Below, piece after piece: positions 11,635 to 51,213 of a stretch of DNA of 64,000 nucleotides. The DNA lies in contig SMSO01000034.1 in the NCBI GenBank assembly GCA_004764695.1, forward strand, positions 1,550,001-1,614,000, given 5' to 3'. The notes under the pieces were generated by a model, which did no database searches, was not told where the DNA came from, and worked only from the letters and a program-made list of their open reading frames with translations. The translations under genes were made by a program, and so were the position numbers. This DNA is from Schizochytrium sp. TIO01. Its lineage: Eukaryota > Protista > Bigyra: Labyrinthulomycetes. Within the stretch, counting starts at the first letter, position 1. Every line of letters starts with the position of its first letter.

Positions 11635-14600
11635 ATGGAGACCCCTCAGAAAACAATCAACAGCCACAAATCTTCTGATCACAGTGAGGATGTCCAGCTC
11701 GAAGATATCCGACTAGAAGAAGCTAATATCCCAAGCCCCAGTGTTCCTGGCAGCCTATCGGATTCTTTCGCCGCTTTCGGCAGCGCTTCCTCAAATTCTA
11801 CTCCTGAAAACCCTAGTTTGGACGATGATGTTATTGTCTCCAGCCCTTCTAAGGCCTCTGTGATCGAGGTTGACGTGTCTGAATTTACTCCTCGCAAACG
11901 TCGCGGTTCTGTCTCCTCGGCCTCTGATATGCGCAGTCCTCGCCTTGCCTCCCTTCTCAGCCCTACGAGGTCCCTCTGCGAAGGCTTTAGCAACGGTGTT
12001 ACGCTAGAGGAAGTTACGGAGAAGCTTCGTCGTGCTGACGACAAGCGGAGCTCCGTTTTGGGACTACGGAAAGAGAAGGCTGGTGCATGGAGCGAAAAAC
12101 ACCGACGAGCCTCAGAAGCAAGGCGCCGCGAGAGCCTTGAAAAAGCGAGCAACCTCGAGGCAAAACTCCAATCTGCGGAACGCCGTCGCAGTCTTCTCCT
12201 GGAAAAACAACAAGCTTCGGCTGCTGCTCAGGTGATCTACGCTCGAGGTGTGCAAGAAAGTAATGCTGCTTCGCAAGCTGCCGAGAGCTTTGAGAGGCGG
12301 GAGAACCTTGAGGAGAGACTTGAGCAGGCGTCAAAGAGGCGTGAGTCGTTTCTCGACGAGGTCTCTGGCAAAGCAGCAGCAACAACAGGAAGGGTATCCA
12401 CGGCACAAGAGCGAGAACAAGAACATGTACAAGAACGCCGCGAGGAGATTGATCGCAGGCTCTCGCAAGCCGCAGAAGCTCGTGAGGAGATGATTGGCTG
12501 TATCAGAGGCCGTGCTCACGAGCTTTCGGAACGCGTGGAACTTGCTAACGCTGCAGCACAGGCAGAAAAAGACCTTCGTCGCGCAAAGCTCGGATGCAGA
12601 CTCTCCGAAGCAGACCAGAGAAGAGCAGAGCAACTCGCGGCAACCCGTGAGAAAGCGCAGAATGCGAACGAAAAAGTTGTACGTAAGAGCGAGGAACTCG
12701 AGATCATGACTGAAGCACGAATGCAGCAGATTGCAGCGAAGATGGAAAGGGCAGACGAAGCGCGGCTTCAGAATATTGAGGACAAAAAGGCTCGAGCGCA
12801 AATTGTGGCGGAGCGCGTTCAAAGAACTGCTATGGAAAATGCGAGGGAGAACGCAGTGAGGAGGCATACTATTGACACGAAAATGGCAGCTGCAGCAGAA
12901 CAGAGGGACCTCGTGATAAATGAGAAAATGAAACGCGCTGGGCGAAACGGAGAACGCATGGAACGCGTGAAAGAAACAACTGAGAAGAAGGCAGAAGCGC
13001 AACTTGAAAAGGTGCAGGCGAAGCTTGATGAAGCAGCAAGTAAAAGAGCAGATGCTATCGATGCCAAAGTTCGCAAGGCGAGACGCCAGAGTGATCGCGT
13101 GGACCGAGCCAAAGAAGCGGCGAAAGATGTGGCGGATGATCGCCGCAAGAGCATTGAATTCAAGCTCGCCAGAGCTTCGGAAGCTCGTGATGAAATTCTC
13201 TCTGAAAAGGCGGCTCGCGCTGCTGAGGAATCGCGAAAGGTGGCATCGAGCAAGAGTACTCTTGAGGAGCAGGCAGATCGCCGACGACAAAGCCTTGATC
13301 GTAAACTGGGCGAAGCTCTCGAGGCACGCGAGAATATCCTTCAGGAGCGCAAGGAGAAAGCAGCAGCTGTAAATGAACGCGTAGACGAAGCGAGAAGGCA
13401 ATCTTTGGTAGATGCCGAGGCGAAAAGGGAACAAATCGCCAAGAAACTCGCGCAGGCAGAGGCCGCTCGGCAAGCAAAACTATCGATTGTGCAAACTAAG
13501 GCCAGCGATGAATCTGCCAAAGTAGAGGCTGTCGGCCAAGATATCCGACGCCGCCAAAGCGTTGAGTCCGAGCAGGCTCGAGAGCAGCTTGAGCAGCGCC
13601 TTGGAAATGCCTCTGAGAATCGCGAGGCAGTCTTGTCCGATCGCAAATTCCGTGCGACGAAGACTACAGATCGCGTGAACGACCGACTTCGGCAGCTTGA
13701 CGAGCAGACCGAACAAAGACGACGTGAACTCGAGCAGCGTCTTGAGGATGCTGCCGACAAACGATCCTCCAGCGTGGCTCAGAGGCAGGCCAAGGCCGGA
13801 CAGCAGATCTCCAAGGTGGTAACTGCTTCGGTGGCTTCTCGTGAAAGGGAGCGACTTGAGGCCGAAGCAAAGCGGGTTGCCTTAGAGCAACGCCTTGACC
13901 AAGCTGAACGATCGCGCTCGACAGTGTTGGCGTCAATCGCGGGTCGTGCTGCTGCAGAGATCCGCAAGGTTGATGAAGCTTCTGCTCAGGCTGAAGAACG
14001 CGTAGAGGAAATGCGGCGTACAATGGACCAGAAGCTTGAAGTGGCTGCAGAAATCCGTGAAGCTTCATTGCTTATGAAGCAAGTGAAGGCCTCGCAGCAG
14101 TCCACGCGTGTGGCGGACGCCAACATCGCACTCAAAGAGCGGACATCTCACCTCAGTAGCACAAAGCTTCGGCTACTCAATGCCAAGCTGGATCAGGCTC
14201 AGGAAGCGCGTTCCGCGGTTCTCTCGGATGTGGCTGCCAAGGCAGCTATCACGAGCGAGAAGGTGAAGCAAGTCTCTAAGACTCTCGAATCTGCATCGGA
14301 TGCACGCCGTGCCGAGCTGGAGCGTCGTATGGGTTCTGCGGCAAGCCAGCGAGAATGCGTCATTCACTCGAAGCAGGTCAAGGCTAGCTCGCACTCTGCC
14401 CGCGTGGAGGCTGCTGGTGAGGCACTAAAGCGGAACCAGTCTCATGAGCTAAACCAGCGTCGGCGTGATATGGATGATCGCCTTGAACAAGCAGCTGCTT
14501 CTCGGGGCGCTGTGCTCGAGTCTCGAAAGGCGAAGGCAGCCGGGGTCAATGAGAAGGTGGCAGTTGCCCTAGCGGCAATGCAAGATGCTTCGGATGGTGA

Positions 14601-14898
14601 GCGTGTGGCCCTTTCGGAGCGTATTGATACCAAGCTGAACCAAGCTAACCAGCGACGCAGTAGTCATTTGGAGGATACTCAGAAGAGGTCTGCAAAGATT
14701 GCTGAGCATGCGCGAAATGTGGCCAAAGCAAAGCTTGAAGAACAAAACGAAAATGCTGAACGTTCACGCTTGGCCATTTCTAGTAAGCTGGAGTCTGCTG
14801 ATGAGCGCCGTTCCAACATCCTTGCGCAGAAAATGAGTCCTACTCGTGGCACGCGCCGCTCTACAGGAGTTCTGTCACCTGCCAATGGTGCGCGTTAA
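11635..14898 (+). CDS. 1087-aa helical protein with 20 stathmin-like repeats after an SP/TP-rich N-terminus
   Basis: Recurrent [KR][LM]xxAxxxRxxx[LIV] core (e.g. KLQSAERRRSLL, KLESADERRSNIL). The first three spacings counted are 47, 51 and 47 aa. Confidence 0.85.
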   Translation: METPQKTINSHKSSDHSEDVQLEDIRLEEANIPSPSVPGSLSDSFAAFGSASSNSTPENPSLDDDVIVSSPSKASVIEVDVSEFTPRKRRGSVSSASDMRSPRLASLLSPTRSLCEGFSNGVTLEEVTEKLRRADDKRSSVLGLRKEKAGAWSEKHRRASEARRRESLEKASNLEAKLQSAERRRSLLLEKQQASAAAQVIYARGVQESNAASQAAESFERRENLEERLEQASKRRESFLDEVSGKAAATTGRVSTAQEREQEHVQERREEIDRRLSQAAEAREEMIGCIRGRAHELSERVELANAAAQAEKDLRRAKLGCRLSEADQRRAEQLAATREKAQNANEKVVRKSEELEIMTEARMQQIAAKMERADEARLQNIEDKKARAQIVAERVQRTAMENARENAVRRHTIDTKMAAAAEQRDLVINEKMKRAGRNGERMERVKETTEKKAEAQLEKVQAKLDEAASKRADAIDAKVRKARRQSDRVDRAKEAAKDVADDRRKSIEFKLARASEARDEILSEKAARAAEESRKVASSKSTLEEQADRRRQSLDRKLGEALEARENILQERKEKAAAVNERVDEARRQSLVDAEAKREQIAKKLAQAEAARQAKLSIVQTKASDESAKVEAVGQDIRRRQSVESEQAREQLEQRLGNASENREAVLSDRKFRATKTTDRVNDRLRQLDEQTEQRRRELEQRLEDAADKRSSSVAQRQAKAGQQISKVVTASVASRERERLEAEAKRVALEQRLDQAERSRSTVLASIAGRAAAEIRKVDEASAQAEERVEEMRRTMDQKLEVAAEIREASLLMKQVKASQQSTRVADANIALKERTSHLSSTKLRLLNAKLDQAQEARSAVLSDVAAKAAITSEKVKQVSKTLESASDARRAELERRMGSAASQRECVIHSKQVKASSHSARVEAAGEALKRNQSHELNQRRRDMDDRLEQAAASRGAVLESRKAKAAGVNEKVAVALAAMQDASDGERVALSERIDTKLNQANQRRSSHLEDTQKRSAKIAEHARNVAKAKLEEQNENAERSRLAISSKLESADERRSNILAQKMSPTRGTRRSTGVLSPANGAR

Positions 14899-21582: not shown

Positions 21583-22075
21583 GACCTTGAAAAAATTATA
21601 TGCTTCAATTACCTTTCATCGCTTTCTTTGAAGACAGACAAAACATATCTGTATATGCACAACATTTCTGTAGGTAGTAATAAGTGCTTATACTCAACCT
21701 CCAAGAGAAATGTACCATCCTCGATTATTACGAAGGGTGCATTATATGTTCTGAACTTTGTAAACCCATCTTCTTAGTGTTGTTCGAAAAAAGCAGATCC
21801 CACATCTGTTTGATATGTTGCCTACTGATAGATTTAAATAAGTCGGCATTATTAATTTGTGCAACGTTTTGATTTAGCAGTCGAATCACGGTTTGAAAGG
21901 AACACATCGAGAAAAAGTTAATATGGATTGTACTGAATTTACTCTTTAGAAAAAATGTGCGATGCACAACAAAAACGAATTAAATAATCATGAGGTCGGA
22001 TAGCTTATGCCCCGGCAAGAGAATACGCTACTCAGTGACCTATTGAGACAAAAAGGAAAGCAGCTCGTCAACCAT

Positions 22076-22198
22076 TTATTGGTCGGCCTTGTAAATAGGG
22101 AGGACACCAACGGTATCCAGACGAGGCCGTGAGATACGAGGCCGAGTGGGAACAGGCTCAGCCTGAACGTTGCGGCGAACAAACTTTGGCTGCTGCAT
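22076..22198 (-). CDS. Microprotein family member 1, 40 aa: MQQPKFVRRNVQAEPVPTRPRISRPRLDTVGVLPIYKADQ
   Basis: ACAATG start context; shares the RPRL[DE]TxxxLP[IM]Y and P.xVR motifs with paralogues at 24.3, 26.1 and 28.2 kb. Confidence 0.75.
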   Translation of the reverse strand: MQQPKFVRRNVQAEPVPTRPRISRPRLDTVGVLPIYKADQ

Positions 22199-22233
22199 TG
22201 TTATTATGAAGTAGAACTTTGGATAGTTTGCTA

Positions 22234-22385
22234 TGGAGGTTTGCTTTGGAGGTTTGCTTTGAGGTTTGCTTTGGAGGTTTGCTTTGGAGGTTTGCTTTGG
22301 AGGTTTAATTTTGGGGGTTTGCTTTGGAGGTTTGCTTTGGAGGTTTGCTTTTGGGGGTTTGCTTTGAGGTCTACTTTTGAGGTCT
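22234..22385. repeat. 13-bp minisatellite (TTTGCTTTGGAGG)n, about 11 degenerate copies, just upstream of microprotein 1
   Basis: Direct reading; it explains the KQTSKANLQSKPP translations seen in two frames. Confidence 0.92.
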
Positions 22386-24329
22386 GCTTCTTTGGGAAGA
22401 TAATCTTGTGCAAGTAGGTATTTTCTCTCTATTGATTTAAAAAAATACGATACACGCGTATCCATCCATCCATATAAAAGTCGATACCTCTGGCTTTCAA
22501 GCATGAGCCTGTGTCTTCAATGCTGGTCGGGTTCTTGGTTGGTTGCTATGCAGTGCGGTGATGAAGCAATTAGCTTCGAAAGAGTGCTGTCACGAAAGCA
22601 AGTATTCACCACAGCAGCAAGCTTGGCGGGAAATCATCACCCCCATCCAAGCTACAGGTCGCTTTACTCCCATGCTCTCCAGCATTTTTCATAGCAAGAA
22701 AGTTACCTGCTTCATAGCCAGAGTTCCCACCATTGGTTCTGCACAGTTAACTCAAAGCTGTCCTGCTTCTTAGCAGGGTGCTGGTCTCGGCCTTGTCTTT
22801 GAGTGGATAAGGAAACTTCTTTAAGCAACAGCTATAGTTGAAGCTAGTTACACTAAGTGCATACGTCAGGCATGTTTCTGTCAGGAATCGACGTGAAATG
22901 GAGGTCGATGCCGGAATTTGTTTTGCCATCTTCTCATAATGATGCATTTGAATGCAGAGAAGCTGCTATGCAGAGAAGCTGCAAGTCTCATCACCAGCCC
23001 TTACTGAATGATTCTCGGCTACTTCAAAGTAGTATGTCTCGATCTATAGAAGTTTCTGTTTTCTCATCCTTGCAAGACTCGTTCTTCGCCTTATTCCTGA
23101 CATAGGAAATACCTTACTCGATAAAGGTGTACGGATACATAAAAATGGATTTTGTAGAGAATGACCTGCATACAAGATATCGGAAAAAATACGATGTATC
23201 ACGATACGATATAGACGAGATTCGAACTACCTTATGAACATAACCTAACTTAAAACCTTGCGTGTGGCACATCTTTAAGGTATAGTGACCTCAAATTCAA
23301 ATCATGATGGTTCAACTTCAAGTGCCGGTGGGCGTGTGCCGTGTACTGCTACTGTGACCTGAGTGACTACCTTTTATAAAGGGATTTCAACGATTACTTT
23401 GTATTCCATGAGAATGATTTTATACTCACACGGTAAATTCATGACTGTGATTGATCAACGAGAAAGGCCTGGTGGGTTGCACAACTCTCGGCTTGCCATG
23501 AGAGCATCTGCTTGATATGAAGGGATGATAACGATTATATTCTCATTGCGCTGGAACGCAGAAATCAATAAGCTAATCTTGCGGCATATCCAAGAAAAGT
23601 CTCGGCAAGAAAACCCTGCTGAGGACTTTTTTTCGTTACATTCCAGCCATCTGTGTAATGAGGACCTTATTGCATCCAAAAAGTTGACTCGAACTTTTTC
23701 ACCTGCCTCTTTTCCCGTAGACCACCCCTCGGAGACAAAATTATAGGCTTATTATGTGGCTATTCTGATTAATTGCAAATAATTCTCGTAGGTGCGCACT
23801 GAGGTGTGTACTCAGACGAAGCTTCAAGGTGCCTCTAATTATAGGAACAGAGTATAGAGCATTAAGATTGATTAAATGTATACAGAATACGATACTTGAA
23901 TGGTTGTTCCACAAATTAAGAGGATCATCTACGTGTTTCCTCAACGTAGCGGGGCGTTATTCAATGCGAGCGAAGAGCAAGTTGGACAATAGATTTGTGA
24001 TTATGATACCCTCTCGCCCACAGCGATTGCTTTGAAGTTACAAAGGCTTCTCAGATAGAGGGAGATTCTCAAACAGAAGGAGAGAGAGGCAAAGAAATGG
24101 CTCTCGTGCTTAGTATTATTCTATTTATTCAAGGGTTAGAACTGAGCAGGGCGGCATAAACTCAAATCTCGAAATAACTCAAGATCAAAGATATTCTAGA
24201 ATCACTTTAAAACAGATTAAAAAATGTTGCATTATGATACATGGTTTGTAATAGAAGTTGCTACATGAAGATAATCCAATTATCTTAGGCAGCAGCACCT
24301 GAATAGGACTACAGATGATTGGCCGAGCT

Positions 24330-24452
24330 TTACTTTGCTTTGGGGGTATAGATGGGTAGAGTCTCGACTGTATCGAGACGAGGGCGCGTAACTCTTGTGC
24401 CGTTGGTAGGCGACATCTGGTTGGCATTGCGGCGAACGACTCGAGGGAACAT
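24330..24452 (-). CDS. Microprotein family member 2, 40 aa: MFPRVVRRNANQMSPTNGTRVTRPRLDTVETLPIYTPKAK (absent from the ORF track)
   Basis: Hand translation: ATG at 24452 in AAAATG context, TAA at 24332-24330. Aligns end to end with members 1 and 3. Confidence 0.78.
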   Translation of the reverse strand: MFPRVVRRNANQMSPTNGTRVTRPRLDTVETLPIYTPKAK

Positions 24453-24657
24453 TTTCTTTTCTACTAGTATATGTATACTATGAATGTCTTTCTTAGCTTG
24501 ACTCAATGATGGCTTTGTATTGCTTGTTTTGATGCGCTTGAGTTTGGGGTTTGCTTTCCAGTTTGCTCCTCAGTTTGCTTTCATCTCTGCTTCTGCCTGC
24601 TTCTCTGCTTGCTTCCTTCTTTGCCATCATTGCTTCGACTGTGAGCACGCGGAGTCG

Positions 24658-24707
24658 AGCTAATTGCACCAACTCTTTGTGCTCGGCAAGCAAGTTAGCT
24701 CCCCACA
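24658..24707. promoter_or_regulatory. Conserved upstream block AGCTAATTGC...ACTC..TGTGCTC...AGCTCCCCACA of microprotein 2
   Basis: Alignable with 26417-26456 upstream of member 3; the 10-mer also occurs inverted at 22566-22575. Confidence 0.55.
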
Positions 24708-26085
24708 GCACTCATCGTGCTCTTGAGATTCTGAGTCTCACGAAAATGGATTCCAGCCTTCCCGTTCTGTTGCTTGAGAACCGGCCGCCTGTACATGGAG
24801 CCATACAGTGAACCGCCCGGTCCCTGTATACAGCACACTGGCTTTGCGGTATGAGGATGCGTTGACCAGGGCTAGATACATAAATGAAAAACAGAGAACC
24901 CAATTTTTCTTGAGTCTCCGCATTGCAATAAGTGGATTCTGATAAGTGCAGGTCATTGAAAGTTGTTCGCCCGCCCTTTGTTCGTTCTCTTGCTGTGTTC
25001 AGGGCTGTAGAAACTTTAGAACTAATAGGCCTATTTATGTACATATATCTCTTTTTCTTTTCTTGTTTAAAGTAAATAGTTTCTTAGAAAACTAAACCCA
25101 TATGAATATTCAAGTTCTTATACGATACCATGGAAGATGGTAATTAAAATCTTTGCGTAGATAAAATGGCCCAGTGCACCGGAGAAGCCTTGACTTAAAG
25201 CATAGTGCTACTTGCGTGATACGATAGGTCTAAGGCCAGCCTTCGCGCCGAGACTGGAGAGGAAAGAAAGATGAGATACCTGGTCTAATACGTGAAAGGT
25301 TGCACGCTACGAAGTGAGATGGAAGCTAAAAGGGAATCTACTTTGCTTCTTACGGAAAAGTGAGCAGAGAAGCCTTTTTCTCTTTAATTAAGAAGCATAC
25401 TTACAATAGGCTGATGCTATATTGTTTGTTTTAAGACACAATATAGCTTCGTGAAAGTGCAGTTCTTGCTCAGTACTGCTTTGTAAATCCTAATGCAAGA
25501 TAGTCCCCAAGCACCTCTGCACACTACCCCAAAACCTGGTCAGTTTTCATTTTGACATTGACTTTTCCTTTATTCACCTACTCCTAAAGTTTGTGGCGCG
25601 CACTTTACTCAAAAGCTGGCCTGACTGCCCTAGACCAGCCTTTTGATATGAATTTGCATTCCATTTAGTAACAATTATACTATGAAATAGGTTACAGCTG
25701 TATTGCAACCAAGAATGACTACGCTATGCAGCCAGCTAAACGCAGTTGCTGTCATCCCACTATCTATTCTGGATATTCACAAATGCTCATGTTTCTTAGT
25801 TTAAGGGAAGCAAGATGATGTATGTCTAGTAGCATCTTGCGTATTTATGCCTGGAGTGTTGGGCCATTCTTCTACGTTAGCAATCTCGATCATATTGGCA
25901 CAGGCAGAAGGTAACAAGCAATAGAGGTATTCAAGATAAAGTTATATCAATTCTCAATTTTATTTCATCATAATAATTCACAGTACAGACTTGGGTGCTT
26001 GTTGAGCAACTAGAACTCACTCAAAAGCATAATAGGGGTTTTCTATGTATGGCAAGACCATTTATTGTCTTGCAAGTAGCTTGCA

Positions 26086-26250
26086 TCATCTTGCAGGGTG
26101 ATGGTTTTCCCCTGTTGGACAGCTTGTATAACTTGCAGATCTGTAGATAGGCAAGCAATCTACAGTCTCAAGCCGAGGTCGTCTAGGTTGCAATTTAGGC
26201 TTCGTGGTGTCTTTGGCGTTCGCTCCTTGACGTACAACGCGCGGCAGCAT
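26086..26250 (-). CDS. Microprotein family member 3, 54 aa: MLPRVVRQGANAKDTTKPKLQPRRPRLETVDCLPIYRSASYTSCPTGENHHPAR
   Basis: First ATG at 26250 in AAAATG context; both family motifs present. Confidence 0.75.
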   Translation of the reverse strand: MLPRVVRQGANAKDTTKPKLQPRRPRLETVDCLPIYRSASYTSCPTGENHHPAR

Positions 26251-26416
26251 TTTCACAAACTTATGCAATATAAGAAGAGCAATTATTGAGCAACCAACTT
26301 CTGCGTTAGGGTTTTGCTGAAAGCCTCTGAGCTGCAACGAAAGCTACGTATCACACGAAAGAAGCACACATTGAGCTATTAGCTTTCAAAGGGGTGCTGG
26401 TCTACTTTTGAAGAGA

Positions 26417-26456
26417 AGCTAATTGCTTACTCGTCTGTGCTCAACAGCTCCCCACA
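26417..26456. promoter_or_regulatory. Conserved upstream block AGCTAATTGC..ACTCGTCTGTGCTC..AGCTCCCCACA of microprotein 3
   Basis: Homologous to 24658-24707. Confidence 0.55.
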
Positions 26457-28166
26457 TATGAAGCAAATTGTTGTTTTTATTTTTCTAATACTGGACTAGC
26501 CTGGAAAAGAGGGATTTAAAACTATTTTTAGCTTACAGGAACACACCAAGCTTGTGGTTGAAATGCCCGAGTATACTAGCCCTACTTACTCTATAAATAA
26601 GGGGCAAAAGGCATATTTATAAAGTCCAGCCGAAAGTACATAATCATGGACCCAACGAGCTTTTGATGTAATCAGTAACTCTTTTACAATCCTTCAAGAC
26701 ATAGTCCTGCCCGAACCCCTCGTTTGGAAGTCATACAAGCAAGTATATATTTTCCATTTATAAGGGTTGACGAGCAGTGTCAACGGATTAGCGTGACTTG
26801 GAAGTTTCTGGTGAAACTAAGCGCGGTTGTTGCTTTAATCTAGTGCGTTGATCGACGCTGGAATGTGAGCTACTGCTTCCGCTAAAGGATGCTGAAGACA
26901 CCTGTGTGCCTAGAGGTTTGGAAATAAGCAGTTTGAACAATTTCCTTTCATTTCCTTCTTCTTCTTTAAAAAAAAAAAAAATAAATCCAAGCATATGTGG
27001 ACGAAGGATGAAATGATTCAAGTAAGGATAATCTTGAGTTGATCAGCGCGGGGAAACCTCACCGCCTATAGCTCTTGAGACTTTGTATGTGAATCCCCTG
27101 AAGCCCTTCCTGTCAATTTGACATAAGGAATCCAATTATTCTGGCTCTCTACCTCTTTCTCTATCTGTGACCATTCACAGGGATGTTCCATCCAATACAC
27201 ACCTTTCTCTTTCTTTTCTTTCTTTGTTCCAGACTACGTTCCCATGCCCACGTATGCTGTCATTGTATAGAAGCAAAATACAATAATCGAATTTCCACAT
27301 GTACACTCCCTGTTACCTTCCATGCTGCCTTCTAACAGCAGCATCGGCGAACAAGAAACTATCTGCCTTCACATAACAACCTCCTATTTCCTCATTCCCC
27401 TATTTATGACCTCTCTATTGGAATTATTACAGTATATTTATTGCGCGGTCTCTCGTATTCTCTTATTTTCATGCTCAAGGTTTTACTCGTAAGCAAGAAA
27501 GCAGTTTTCGCATATAGAACCAGAAACAAGATAGGTACAAGTACGTATACTACTAGGTAGTGGACAGTAATAAATCTTGTGATAAGCCTTGTTTACAATC
27601 ATCCAAATTCACCAATATTGTCAAGAAATAATAGACCTTTAGCTAGAGGAACCAAGGATACACAACAAAACAATGCATTCGTGTTGCTAGGTATTGTTGA
27701 GTTTAGCGAAGATCAATCTTATTGGTGAATGTCTGCCCTCATTTGAAATTGCGTAGCACGAAGCAAACTTACATTGGTAAGCTATGAATGATCTCAGCTT
27801 TACAAATCTAGTATCATTCGATATCATATTCAACAAGAAAATACTGAAATCCGAATTTATCTGTAGGTTTTAAAACGGGGGGGAGGGGGGGTGTCAAGAA
27901 ATTGGAAGAACAAGGAAGCAAGAAAGGATTCTTGACAAGGCATGAACTTGGATTTGAAGATAAAAAGCATGCTTTACACATCATCTGCCATTGATGCAAA
28001 TCGAGCTATGAATAAAAATAAGTCAATTAACCACAACGGAGCTTCCCTACGCAAACATTCATGATTCCTTCAAATCAAATCCATATCTAAAACCCAAAAC
28101 AAATGTAATGGGATCAATTTATATATATAATAAGAAAGACAGCAAGCCCACAGCTTAGACTTGTAG

Positions 28167-28427
28167 TTATAGCTTTGGAGGAATATACATCGGTAGCACC
28201 TCAGATGTCTCAAGCCGTGGTCTCGAAAGCGTTGACCTGGTCTTAATTATGGGCGAAAAAAATAATGGTTTGGTAAGCTGAGCTGCATCTGACTCGTGGT
28301 TCTTGACCTGCTTTTCATTCCCTGAAAGAGAAGATCTCGTACCAACTTCAGTCATACTCCTAATACGAATAACTATCATGGACGGCGCTGAGTTCTGAGC
28401 AGCGGTCTTTCCCATTTCCTCTGGCAT
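28167..28427 (-). CDS. Microprotein family member 4, divergent, up to 86 aa, ending ...LSRPRLETSEVLPMYIPPKL
   Basis: Carries the full C-terminal motif, on the same strand and at the same ~2-kb spacing. Start codon uncertain (several in-frame ATGs). Confidence 0.6.
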   Translation of the reverse strand: MPEEMGKTAAQNSAPSMIVIRIRSMTEVGTRSSLSGNEKQVKNHESDAAQLTKPLFFSPIIKTRSTLSRPRLETSEVLPMYIPPKL

Positions 28428-31400: not shown

Positions 31401-32544
31401 ACCAGAGCTTGATTTTTCTCCGGCAATAAACCTCGACACATTCACAAACTCTACATGAACTACAGCGCACGCCTTCTCCCTGGACATTATTTGTCATTTG
31501 AAGGAGCCAGAAGGGCTAAAGCTGCTTCCTTTTCAGACTAACGGGCAATGAATGCTGGCTTCCATTTTATGAGCACTACTGCTAAATAGATAGTGTACGC
31601 TAATTTTAGAGAGAGAAAAGAGCAGGTAGCTAGTATTACAACTATGCTATTTACTTAAACCTCATTTCTCCATCGCTCCGCTGCATAAAATTTAATTTAA
31701 AAAAAAAAAATGTTGGAATTTCCCCCCCCTTTTTTTTTTAAATAAAAATTAAAGCGCGCTGATTCTCCAACAAGAAGTTTTCCATATTTGTTAAGATAGC
31801 GCAACGCATTGATTTTGTTTTGTTTCTTTAGCGATTTTTAAATATTCGGACAGGAAATACTACCGCTAGGTTGTATATAACTTTCGAACAAGCAAAACGA
31901 AAACCCAGATGTAATAATCTCACCTATAGATGTTCGACAGAGGCCAAAGGGGCAGAAGCCAGGCACCAGCCTTCATATACGTCACAACCGCATTGGAACC
32001 ATCAGGAGCTCCAGCAAACTTGCAAACCCAGATTCTAAGGGATGCGCTCTAGGCTTAGCTTTGAGCAAATCACAATGCCACTCAAGAACGATGTATGTGA
32101 ATCATGCTATTGCAGACTTGTACGAAGGGAAGGCATGGGTGTTTGTCCCAAGCCAAAAGCAAAGCCATATCGTCAGAGGCTATTTATTGTAGAGGTCCTC
32201 CCCATCTATGTTCCAGCTTGACCACAATAAATCTGGTGCAGATGATATTCGAGGTTCTTCGGTGCCGATCTACGAATACTTAAAGAAAATAAATATGGAA
32301 AACTGTACAATTTAAATTTGACACAGCGGCTATGCCTAATTTTCAACAAGTCTTGCGGACCCCGGATTAATTTCGAGTCAGAATTGGTCAATCAGGTATA
32401 TCTGTTGAGTTGAGGTCTGGAATGTGACAGCGCATACATGCTACGTAACCCTTCAAACGGGTAGTAAAGATGGAACATCTCTGTTGAATAGCTTTATTAG
32501 ATATGAAATATCATGTTTTAGTTTATATACTTGCACATGAATAG

Positions 32545-45873: not shown

Positions 45874-48570
45874 ATGACAACATCGCGAGCAAAAATTCAA
45901 GATGGTATTTATTTTAGTCCTGCCATCCGCGTAAAGAGAAAACCGTCTGGAACTTTTGAAAGCCGTAGCGAGAGAGACCTTAACACAGCAAAAGAACATA
46001 CAATTGGAGATGACATAAATAAAGGGGATTTCTATCTTCCAAGGCTTCTTGAACCCAACGAAGAACCAAAGTTTAGTGAAGCATCTCGAAAGCGCATCCA
46101 ACTTAGTGGTAATCTCCTCAACACAAACCCTTTGAGCGACCTATTACCATGGCCAACTGGTGAGCCGATCAGTACTACAGAGACTAAATCAAAGAGGACA
46201 AGCGAGCATCAGCAAAACTGTATTTCTCAAATTTCCCCAAAGCATGATTTCGGTTATGATTCTGATTTTCCTGATTTAAATCAACCTACTCTTTTGGAAA
46301 CAATAGCTACGCCTACTGAGAATATGAATAACCAGATTCCCTCCCCGAAAGAAGTGCCAGGATTGTATATAAAGGTCTCCCGAACGTCCTCACATTCAGA
46401 AAGATGGGGCCCTGGGAATCTGGGGCGCAAGGTTAAAGGGCTTCCAAAGCTAGAAGCAGAAATTTCTATACGACATCACGCAGTACTAGATGAGATGGGC
46501 CGAGTCCATCTTCGACATCAACGATTTGTAGAGCTCCAAGAGCGAGTTGATGTACAACTAATTACGCCACTGAAGCTTTATCTAATGCGTTCCTCAGATT
46601 TTTACCAAGAACGCCCGATGATGCCATGCGCTAACAATACCTTCCTTCTAGATAATTTTGATCACAAACATGGTTACCAAGAACCAGTCCGAAACCGATC
46701 AAGGAATTGGTGGGAAGAACTTTGGACAGAACTTGCCCCAAATCTTATACCATTTCGAAAACGTATTGCTCAGGAAGCCACAGAAGCAGAAGCATTAGCA
46801 GCATTTGAGAGCAAGCGAAAAGTATATGTTGATGGCGTTCTCATGAACCAGCTTTTAATCTTGCGTCAAGGCGCTGTACTTAGTGGGCATGCCATGGTAC
46901 TTTCGGTGTATGGCATGGGCATTGCTGGTCGTGTGTATATCAAGCCAGCTCGCTTCCCACGTCATCTAAAAATCGAGGCCTACTGCCCCCGGCAAATGAT
47001 GACCTATACTCTTCGTGTGGACCTTGAAGACCTTGAAAACCTTTTCAAGGACAGCCTCTACATGTTAGACCCAGGACACAAGAAGGAACTTTGTGAAGAG
47101 CTCCTCCAGATGCTTTATCTCGATGAATCAATTATGGCATTACGTTTAGCAAGAAAAGTTCCACAAGAGTCTACTTTGACTCAACAAAGACGGAAAGAAA
47201 GAAAGCAAGCCCGTATCTCCCAGCAGGAACGCTTGTTGCGAATTTCCCGTGGAGAGGATGTTGACGGCCTACATGCTACTCTTCGGAGCACTACAGCTGA
47301 TTCAACTGGGCATAAAACACGAAAGCGACCATGGCTCCGGCTTCAAGACCAAGTATTATCAACAGTCGTACGACTATCTAACTATAAGCTCGTGCTCACA
47401 GTACATGCGCCTGCAAGACGCAAGAATGTACTCATCATTCGGGCTTATGATCAAGAGTCTTCCAAAACATTTCAACTTATTCTGAGCTTACGCGAATTGG
47501 GTCGTAGACTCGGGGACAAGCGAGATCCAGACCTTTGGGATACCGATCAACGGAAAACAAACTGTGAAGCTATGATTTCTATGCTTTCATTACGCAGTCT
47601 CAATGTTGCTGGAACTGAAATGGCATTAGCCATACAAGATCGTGTGGGCCTTGCAAGGCCTGGACTTGGTCTTAAAAAGAATGAAACAAGACGCCATGCA
47701 CTGACACTCCCTTCAGCTCTATTAAAAACTATACAAGGTGGCGGACATGATGATAGGGGCGATGCACGACGCTCGACCATCCTTCCCGGACTAGGAGGAG
47801 GCGGTCGTATGCGTAAGAGTACCATGGTGGGCAGCCGGCGCACAACGATAGCTATGGACCAAGCTACTTCACGAAAAGATATTGGAAAAGGTAAATTACT
47901 ATGCCGTTGCATACATAAGATTTCTCATGAGACTTGCATCATTAGCTTTTATTCTGGACGTGGAGACCAGGATCTCGTCTCATGGGTTATTTATGTGATC
48001 AAAACTAGTGAAACGCATCGTCTTACGCTGTCTCGAAGCGAGTTAGAAGCTCTACTTAAAACCCACCCAGAAATTGTTGAAGAACAACTGAATGCAAATG
48101 GCTATCGTGCACAACCCCTTTCTGAGAATGTGCTCTGCAATATTATACTACGAGAGCGTATAGCCTTGGGTCCAGGCTGGATCCCAGTGTTAGATCGTAG
48201 CATTTATAGGCGGGGACATCGACTAAAATGGAGTTTCCCGAATGCAAACACGAATGGAATCTCTCAACAGTCTGTTGGAATCCCAACTTCACCAACTGTA
48301 AGCAAAACCGAGGCTGTCGCTACACAACTTGTGTCATATTGCGTAGTCACGGTTTACCTCCTAGATGCAACAACTATTGAATTTGAGGTTTTTGAACGTG
48401 CATCTTGCCAAACTTGCACGTATCGATCTCCACAAGAAGTAATGGAGGCAATCATGACTGATTTAAAGGCTTTGAATGATCTCGAACGGACTATCCAGTT
48501 AGGTACAATTATTGCATCGTTCAAGCTTTCCAGAACGGTGAATGGCCTCATCACTATACATGACATATAA
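45874..48570 (+). CDS. Uncharacterised 898-aa protein with about four copies of a beta-rich module
   Basis: Long ATG-initiated ORF; recurring pattern (hydrophobic strands, I.AY, S..T..L.L...EL). No family recognised. Confidence 0.8.
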   Translation: MTTSRAKIQDGIYFSPAIRVKRKPSGTFESRSERDLNTAKEHTIGDDINKGDFYLPRLLEPNEEPKFSEASRKRIQLSGNLLNTNPLSDLLPWPTGEPISTTETKSKRTSEHQQNCISQISPKHDFGYDSDFPDLNQPTLLETIATPTENMNNQIPSPKEVPGLYIKVSRTSSHSERWGPGNLGRKVKGLPKLEAEISIRHHAVLDEMGRVHLRHQRFVELQERVDVQLITPLKLYLMRSSDFYQERPMMPCANNTFLLDNFDHKHGYQEPVRNRSRNWWEELWTELAPNLIPFRKRIAQEATEAEALAAFESKRKVYVDGVLMNQLLILRQGAVLSGHAMVLSVYGMGIAGRVYIKPARFPRHLKIEAYCPRQMMTYTLRVDLEDLENLFKDSLYMLDPGHKKELCEELLQMLYLDESIMALRLARKVPQESTLTQQRRKERKQARISQQERLLRISRGEDVDGLHATLRSTTADSTGHKTRKRPWLRLQDQVLSTVVRLSNYKLVLTVHAPARRKNVLIIRAYDQESSKTFQLILSLRELGRRLGDKRDPDLWDTDQRKTNCEAMISMLSLRSLNVAGTEMALAIQDRVGLARPGLGLKKNETRRHALTLPSALLKTIQGGGHDDRGDARRSTILPGLGGGGRMRKSTMVGSRRTTIAMDQATSRKDIGKGKLLCRCIHKISHETCIISFYSGRGDQDLVSWVIYVIKTSETHRLTLSRSELEALLKTHPEIVEEQLNANGYRAQPLSENVLCNIILRERIALGPGWIPVLDRSIYRRGHRLKWSFPNANTNGISQQSVGIPTSPTVSKTEAVATQLVSYCVVTVYLLDATTIEFEVFERASCQTCTYRSPQEVMEAIMTDLKALNDLERTIQLGTIIASFKLSRTVNGLITIHDI

Positions 48571-49066
48571 GAGACATATCCGTATCAATAGAAGACAAGA
48601 TAATTATACAAATGAAAATGAATTATGTACTTTCTTTAAACCTGTGATAAATGCGACGCAACACCAGCAAGGATCAATTGTCTTCGTGAAACCTCCATTC
48701 ACCACTTGGAGAACCTTATCTTATGATATCAAAGGACCAAACAAGGGGATATGGCAAGACACAGAGTTAACAGAGACAAAATCGCGAAGGGGGGAGAAAG
48801 CATCAATCAATCAGCTTGCATGCGGGCGCACGCGCATATGCACATCCTTGAAGTAGGTTATTATATGATGAGGAAGCCAAGGAAACGAAAGGGTCCAAGG
48901 CAGGTATAAGGGAAATATTTTGAAAGAAGACGTAGGAGATAAAGTGGGATTGCGAGTAACCTCTTTATATATTCATAAAGAAGGAACTACCATGGTACGT
49001 AGAATTTGTAAAAAATGTAGGGTTTGATAGTGACAAATGGGTTTGGACAACTTGACTTTCAGGTGC

Positions 49067-51213
<2,147 letters not shown>

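Follow-up and report, generated by a model that had tools for sequence, protein, structure and literature searches.

The genome of the thraustochytrid Schizochytrium sp. TIO01 (64 Mb, 37 contigs) contains a family of microprotein genes, several of which form a row in a 64,000-nt stretch of contig SMSO01000034.1 (C33 in the table). This whole stretch was analyzed and is called the window below. A sequence-only reading of the window had proposed an old tandem family of four basic microproteins; the finding is real and was understated, since five members are located in the window and at least 14 in the genome. The products are typically 40-60 residues long, and their only strongly conserved part is a linear motif of 13 residues close to the C-terminus. 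The best explanation of the data is a set of independent, intron-less, polyadenylated genes whose products are basic, intrinsically disordered microproteins of one family, apparently restricted to its lineage, and that the family is truly coding is very probable.

The four minus-strand open reading frames (ORFs) of the earlier proposal were found exactly where it had placed them, with products of 40, 40, 54 and 86 residues (the last counted from the ATG at 28427). The distances between successive stop codons, 2254, 1756 and 2081 bases, agree with the 1.8-2.3 kb given before. All four motif strings and every synonymous codon listed for them were correct on recheck, and the ATGs of members 1-3 have an A at position -3. 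Member 4 is the weakest of the four: it has no N-terminal motif and its start is uncertain, with candidate ATGs located 44-68 codons upstream of the conserved motif.

The conserved motif, termed motif B here, reads R-[P]-R-[L]-x-T-x-x-[V]-L-P-x-[Y/F] and is followed by 1-18 residues and the stop codon. Both arginines, the leucine and the proline are invariant in 13 of 13 members; the last position is Tyr in nine and Phe in four of them, and Ala in the 14th member. Seven members contain in addition motif A ([KR]-[LVF]-V-R-R-[NG]), at a fixed distance of about 16 residues upstream of motif B. Over the 13 motif codons of 13 members the mean proportion of synonymous differences (pS) is 0.78, which is saturated, and the mean proportion of non-synonymous differences (pN) is 0.31. 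The invariant first Arg is encoded by all six Arg codons, and the invariant Leu by CTC, CTA, TTG and TTA. Saturated synonymous sites, low pN and varied codons together indicate purifying selection on the peptide. The flanking DNA had been described as not alignable, and a self-comparison of 21.6-32.6 kb with word size 7 indeed aligned nothing between the units, with one exception, a 70-base CAAACC-type repeat directly upstream of members 1 and 2. Both results support the view that selection acts on the peptide and that the units are not a DNA repeat. The loosely back-translated core RPRL[DE]T matches 44 times in 64 Mb, compared to 49 times in a reversed control; since the core thus occurs at chance frequency genome-wide, four co-oriented copies within 6.2 kb are far beyond chance.

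A profile built from the four members was searched against the genome and retrieved five further ORFs (E 0.002-0.2); two more rounds brought the family to 14. Three of the five first-round ORFs are clustered within 5 kb of contig C34; another is member 5 of the window, which matched the four-member profile with E 0.026 before its own inclusion. Motif B of member 5 has Ile where others have Thr. An imperfect palindrome of about 73-90 bases is located about 300 nt upstream of this gene, at 31683-31772. The weakest members are two of those on contig C30 (C30b and C30c), admitted with E 0.06 and 0.5. In the C34 cluster, the member L038 has an open frame without an in-frame ATG and may use another start or be decaying. 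A further motif copy, RGRLPTTDVLPLF, was seen on the minus strand of contig C3 (about 456,195-457,922; L055:1114-2841), where an ORF for a hybrid histidine kinase has it in the linker between its HATPase_c and receiver domains; with E 0.04 it may be a true instance of the linear motif or a chance match.

RNA was examined over positions 21900-27899 of the window, a region that covers members 1-3. The sequencing runs (X1, X3 and X6) are stored as contigs, which gives one depth figure per contig, and their label as RNA was a guess by the tool. A 371-nt contig of X3 matches 21907-22255, including member 1, at a depth of 224. It ends in 22 T before 21907 that are unmatched by the genome, the minus strand reading TGTGTTCC at this place, without an A-run. 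These residues are thus the non-templated poly(A) of a minus-strand RNA, which shows that the library is cDNA and fixes the strand. Repeat k-mers of the member 1 leader are present at transcript-level depth up to 22351. In X1 and X6 the contig of member 1 continues into the convergent ceramidase gene, and its depth is therefore uninformative for member 1 alone. Member 2 stands alone in its own contig in two studies, at 24217-24529 with depth 413 (X3) and at 24206-24542 with depth 310 (X6), while the flanks have a depth of 4-29. Member 3 is covered by a 404-nt X3 contig on 25942-26342 with a depth of 14; the X3 depth between genes is 4-13. Absence of minus-strand transcripts had been named as one observation that would speak against the genes, and short polyadenylated minus-strand transcripts were found over members 1-3. 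Compared to the assembly, X3 carries an 8-nt insertion (TATATGTA) at window position 24467, in the 5' untranslated region (5'UTR) of member 2. X1 and X6 show about 30 differences from the window over 6 kb; one only is located inside a microprotein ORF, at 26136, where it replaces Ala39 of member 3 by Thr, in a tail that is not conserved.

The transcripts could also be non-coding RNAs or pieces of larger spliced genes, with ORFs that are incidental. Translation is deduced only, the RNA depth of member 3 is low and RNA support is limited to members 1-3, all of which would suit this explanation. However, the ORF starts at the first ATG of each of the three transcripts, with the A at -3, and no joints were reported in the RNA contigs over the examined region, which argues that the genes have no introns. 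An incidental ORF would also leave unexplained why amino acids are kept in unalignable DNA with saturated synonymous sites, and why motif A keeps its distance from motif B in seven members. We therefore give very little credence to this explanation.

The 5' leader of member 1 contains a tandem array of short units (Table). The frame of member 1 is open through the array as far as an ATG at 22504, but this ATG seems to lie upstream of where the abundant transcript starts. In 8 of 13 members the 200 nt before the ATG contain the element GCAAA(A)CC, on the sense strand only, with nine copies in the member 1 leader; elsewhere the background is 0.11 per strand-kb. Since the element was picked after inspection, this enrichment is only indicative.

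Table. Members of the microprotein family and associated elements. Positions are those of the window unless a contig is named; CDS, coding sequence.
Feature	Position	Strand	Remarks
Member 1, CDS, 40 aa	22076..22198	-	motif B RPRLDTVGVLPIY at 22129-22091; starts at first ATG of transcript
Member 1, mRNA, minimal extent	21907..22351	-	3' end at 21907 with non-templated poly(A); leader holds nine GCAAACC repeats
Tandem array, ~13-nt units (AAAGCAAACCTCC)	22208-22389	-	in 5' leader of member 1 mRNA
Member 2, CDS, 40 aa	24330..24452	-	motif B at 24386-24348
Member 2, mRNA, ~320-340 nt	24206..24542	-	5'UTR ~77-90 nt, 3'UTR ~113-124 nt
GCAAACC, sense strand	24548..24554	-	102 nt before member 2 ATG
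Member 3, CDS, 54 aa	26086..26250	-	motif B at 26181-26143
Member 3, transcript-sized contig, low depth	25942..26342	-	X3 contig
GCAAACC-like, sense strand	26310-26317	-	member 3, -67
Member 4, ORF	28167..28427	-	motif B RPRLETSEVLPMY at 28223-28185; profile E 8e-13, itself included in profile
GCAAACC-like, sense strand	32022-32028	+	member 5, -20
Member 5, newly found, up to 59 aa	32042..32221	+	motif B RQRLFIVEVLPIY at 32171-32209; motif A is LVRREG
Family on contig C33 (window)			five members
Second cluster, contig C34	2,304,235-2,311,755	mixed	four members (L053, L039, L038, L041), spacing 1.6-3 kb
Family on contig C30			four dispersed members, one a 117-aa ORF ending in ...RPRLYTQAVLPLAQN
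Family on contig C24			one member

The products had been predicted to be basic, probably disordered and without signal peptide, and this was supported by isoelectric point (pI), hydropathy and AlphaFold2. All members are hydrophilic, with a pI of 9.2-11.7 and 6-18% proline; the highest hydropathy over nine residues is 2.5, and no segment resembles a signal peptide. AlphaFold2, run on member 1 with the family alignment, predicted no secondary structure (predicted local distance difference test score, pLDDT, 79; predicted template modelling score, pTM, 0.19). A role of the ORFs as precursors of bioactive peptides that are exported or processed, the mature product being the C-terminal 13-20 residues, is very improbable. 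It would fit the constantly C-terminal location of the conserved part, the diverged tandem paralogues and the likeness of RPRL...P.[F/Y] to apelin-13 (QRPRLSHKGPMPF). However, no member has a signal peptide or hydrophobic segment, dibasic sites do not flank the motif, and Pfam gave no match; a hydrophobic N-terminus and a Pfam match, which apelin would lead one to expect, are thus both lacking. The C-terminal location itself is weak evidence, since in stop-rich, non-coding-like DNA most random matches to a motif fall within 20 codons of a stop.

No known family was recognized for these proteins by the sequence-only reading, and none was matched in Pfam, the PDB or the protein collections. Searches of Pfam with nine members (hmmscan, E up to 10) gave no match, including to the PRAS family, and a profile search of the PDB matched no chain. 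A word-indexed search of 5.8 billion proteins found none, either with the four-member alignment or with the 117-aa member. The best score in the ESM Atlas was 0.77, which is under the useful range. A profile search of 1.84 billion representatives returned two proteins only (P0001 and P0002), both composed of KRPRLDTGDY / MRPRLYTVDH tandem units; they are probably translated tandem DNA repeats and were not taken as relatives. Scanning metagenomes with a protein pattern yielded 34 matches and no relative, and a DNA pattern gave 27 matches that are chance-like, the only contig with two matches containing two identical repeat copies. None of ten ORFs is an exact entry among about 15 billion proteins, which agrees with the claim that such genes are missed by gene callers. 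No literature was found on small ORFs in this group of organisms, nor on the family.

Motif B suggests what the microproteins may do. R-x-R-x-x-S/T is the consensus of kinases of the Akt/SGK/S6K type, and the motif has Arg at positions -5 and -3 in 13 of 13 members and Thr at position 0 in 11 of 13, Ser in none. The R-x-R-x-x-T half of the motif would accordingly be an acceptor site for a basophilic AGC kinase of this class, and the microproteins would be abundant small substrates or decoys of that kinase, with the two members lacking Thr as pseudosubstrates. Phosphorylation of the Thr may switch what the adjacent V-L-P-x-[Y/F] element, or a phospho-reader, binds. 14-3-3 would be one candidate reader, and several 14-3-3 genes are present in the genome. 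We assign this mechanism a probability of roughly 0.4.

The closest known counterpart of the putative acceptor site is found in human PRAS40 (AKT1S1), where residues 238-256 read DLPRPRLNTSDFQKLKRKY and contain the Akt site Thr246 (PMC2708931). Phosphorylation of Thr246 by Akt leads to 14-3-3 binding (PMC5620322), as would be expected of the microproteins if 14-3-3 were their reader. R-P-R-L-x-T with a Thr acceptor is identical between PRAS40 (RPRLNT) and members 1-4 as well as most others, and several members share the acidic residue at +2 and the hydrophobic residue at +3 (T-S-[DE]-V, compared to T-S-D-F in PRAS40). In each case the site is located about 10 residues before the C-terminus, in a disordered chain rich in proline. 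In contrast, PRAS40 is 256 residues long and has a PRAS domain and a TOR signalling (TOS) motif, whereas the microproteins have 40-60 residues, do not match PRAS and carry the extra invariant V-L-P-x-[Y/F], which PRAS40 lacks. A TOS motif (F-x-[ILMV]-[DE]-[ILMV]) is present in only 1 of 13 members, where it overlaps motif B. The PRAS profile (PF15798) gave no match in the genome; it was equally silent in control genomes, so that absence is not proven. The likeness to PRAS40 is one of a single linear motif and not of homology.

Among the proteins encoded by the genome are AGC kinases that have Akt2 (including entry 1o6k), Akt1, SGK1 and S6K1 as their closest relatives of solved structure. One of them, L074, consists of a kinase domain and an AGC tail without a PH domain. 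Residues 100-467 of L074 were co-folded with ATP and member 2 in three runs and with three controls. The co-fold passed with a score of 0.66 (runs 0.69, 0.66 and 0.66), compared to 0.10 for the best control; contacts agreed between runs to at least 60%, and the pLDDT of the partner was at least 45. The confident interface comprises residues 21-23 and 25-32 of member 2, i.e., the motif, and motif A is located outside it. Thr28 is predicted to contact three sites of the kinase: Asp244, the catalytic residue, Leu265, which follows the DFG, and the P+1 loop (279-281). Arg25 is predicted to contact Glu248, and Arg23 to contact Glu283 and residues 315-319. This predicted pose is canonical for a substrate. 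The GSK3-beta Ser9 peptide GRPRTTSFAE has been solved in complex with Akt2. It shares R-P-R-x-x-[S/T]-hydrophobic with the microproteins, and member 2 is predicted to bind in an identical register, with Arg at -5 and -3 and the acceptor at the catalytic Asp; the GSK3-beta peptide differs in its Ser acceptor, compared to Thr in the microproteins, and has no counterpart of L-P-x-[Y/F].

Several points weigh against a role as kinase substrate. The pass mark, attained by 51 of the 78 solved complexes and by 2 of the 108 mismatched pairs, was calibrated on a set without peptides, disordered chains or a riding ligand. Since solved Akt-peptide complexes exist, the pass may reflect likeness only, and it does not discriminate between kinases of the class. 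AGC specificity does not account for the invariant L-P (+4, +5) or the aromatic residue (+7), of which only the Leu is part of the confident interface. Only 4 of 13 members combine an intact R-x-R-x-x-T with a hydrophobic residue, Val, at +1, the others having Thr, Ser, Asn, Glu or Gln; Pro at +2, as in a classical 14-3-3 site, occurs in 0 of 13, and two members have no Thr at all. A motif of 13 residues with about seven constrained positions can mimic several linear motifs by chance. No orthologue from another species was found in protein collections or metagenomes. Translation and phosphorylation of the members are inferred, as are the kinase involved, any reader and any effect that follows.

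The residues that a kinase site leaves unexplained would be the core of a different explanation, in which the motif is a docking peptide for another partner, R-x-R is a mere basic anchor and the microproteins act as adaptors or competitive inhibitors. We consider this possible, with the odds rather against it. Candidate partners are a WW ligase of the Nedd4 type, bound through L-P-x-Y, an FHA domain reading pThr-x-x-Val, a mitogen-activated protein (MAP) kinase groove and the destruction box (D-box; R-x-x-L) receptor of the anaphase-promoting complex/cyclosome (APC/C). In its favour, L and P never vary and the aromatic position hardly does, L-P-x-Y is present in 9 of 13 members and T-x-x-[ILV] in 10 of 13. 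The latter, together with an acceptor that is always Thr when present and never Ser, would suit a pThr-specific reader such as FHA. In comparison to known WW ligands (L-P-x-Y/P-P-x-Y), however, Phe replaces Tyr in four of the 13 members and Ala in the 14th, which is a poor fit, and the flanks are unlike those of known adaptors. For MAP kinases the docking motif of JIP1, RPKRPTTLNLF, served as comparison, but the corresponding D-motif is found in only 3 of 13 members and a D-box in only 5 of 13 (ELM patterns). A calcineurin PxIxIT site occurs in 1 of 13 members and was rejected. Proline-tyrosine nuclear localization signal (PY-NLS), peroxisomal targeting signal 2 (PTS2), nuclear export signal and mimicry of a kinase activation loop (T-x4-P-x-Y) were considered by eye only and set aside.

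Small heat-stable regulators of kinases and phosphatases are of comparable build. PKI, inhibitor-1/DARPP-32 and ENSA/ARPP-19 are short, disordered and basic or charged, one or two linear motifs of theirs occupy the substrate site of an enzyme, and several belong to small paralogue families. The microproteins are alike in size, disorder and motif-based build, without sequence relation or Pfam match. A PKI-like R-R-N-A is part of motif A in member 2 only and lacks the hydrophobic residue at +1. Searched for the features of PKI, the 13 members contain R-R-x-[AG]-hydrophobic once, and neither a Pfam match nor an AlphaFold2-predicted helix was obtained. The microproteins may be regulatory, as the sequence-only reading proposed.

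An extended form of the kinase-substrate reading combines both halves of the motif. The family would consist of lineage-evolved, multigene and highly expressed "micro-substrates" in which an AGC-type Thr site resembling the PRAS40 tail is joined to a V-L-P-x-[Y/F] docking element, forming a phospho-switch that buffers or routes TOR/AGC and 14-3-3 signalling. The members without Thr would then be pseudosubstrate inhibitors, and V-L-P-x-[Y/F] would be an undescribed linear motif with its own partner. This full scheme is speculative and, as a whole, unlikely.

The window also has long, intron-free ORFs that encode a ceramidase, pirin, a glutathione S-transferase (GST), JHY and a DUF4378 protein of 2,723 aa. 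Every ORF that starts between 22.5 and 32.5 kb is shorter than 130 aa. Three plus-strand ORFs have no Pfam match: 11635-14898 (1087 aa), 45874-48570 (898 aa) and 49037-50503 (488 aa). The first of these is located in a stretch with raised G+C (0.55) and strong AT skew (0.32).

What seemed a gene desert of 10 kb in this compact protist genome is occupied by a row of expressed genes, and all members of the family were overlooked by gene callers. The family is a clean case of microproteins kept by selection on a short linear motif, and its host is a transformable organism with an industrial use in lipid production. If the kinase reading is true, the microproteins would be small, tractable handles on growth signalling of the AGC/TOR type in stramenopiles; they would also hold a new docking motif, whose partner could be retrieved with the 13-residue peptide. 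If it fails, they are still a conserved, abundant and unannotated gene family that needs a function.

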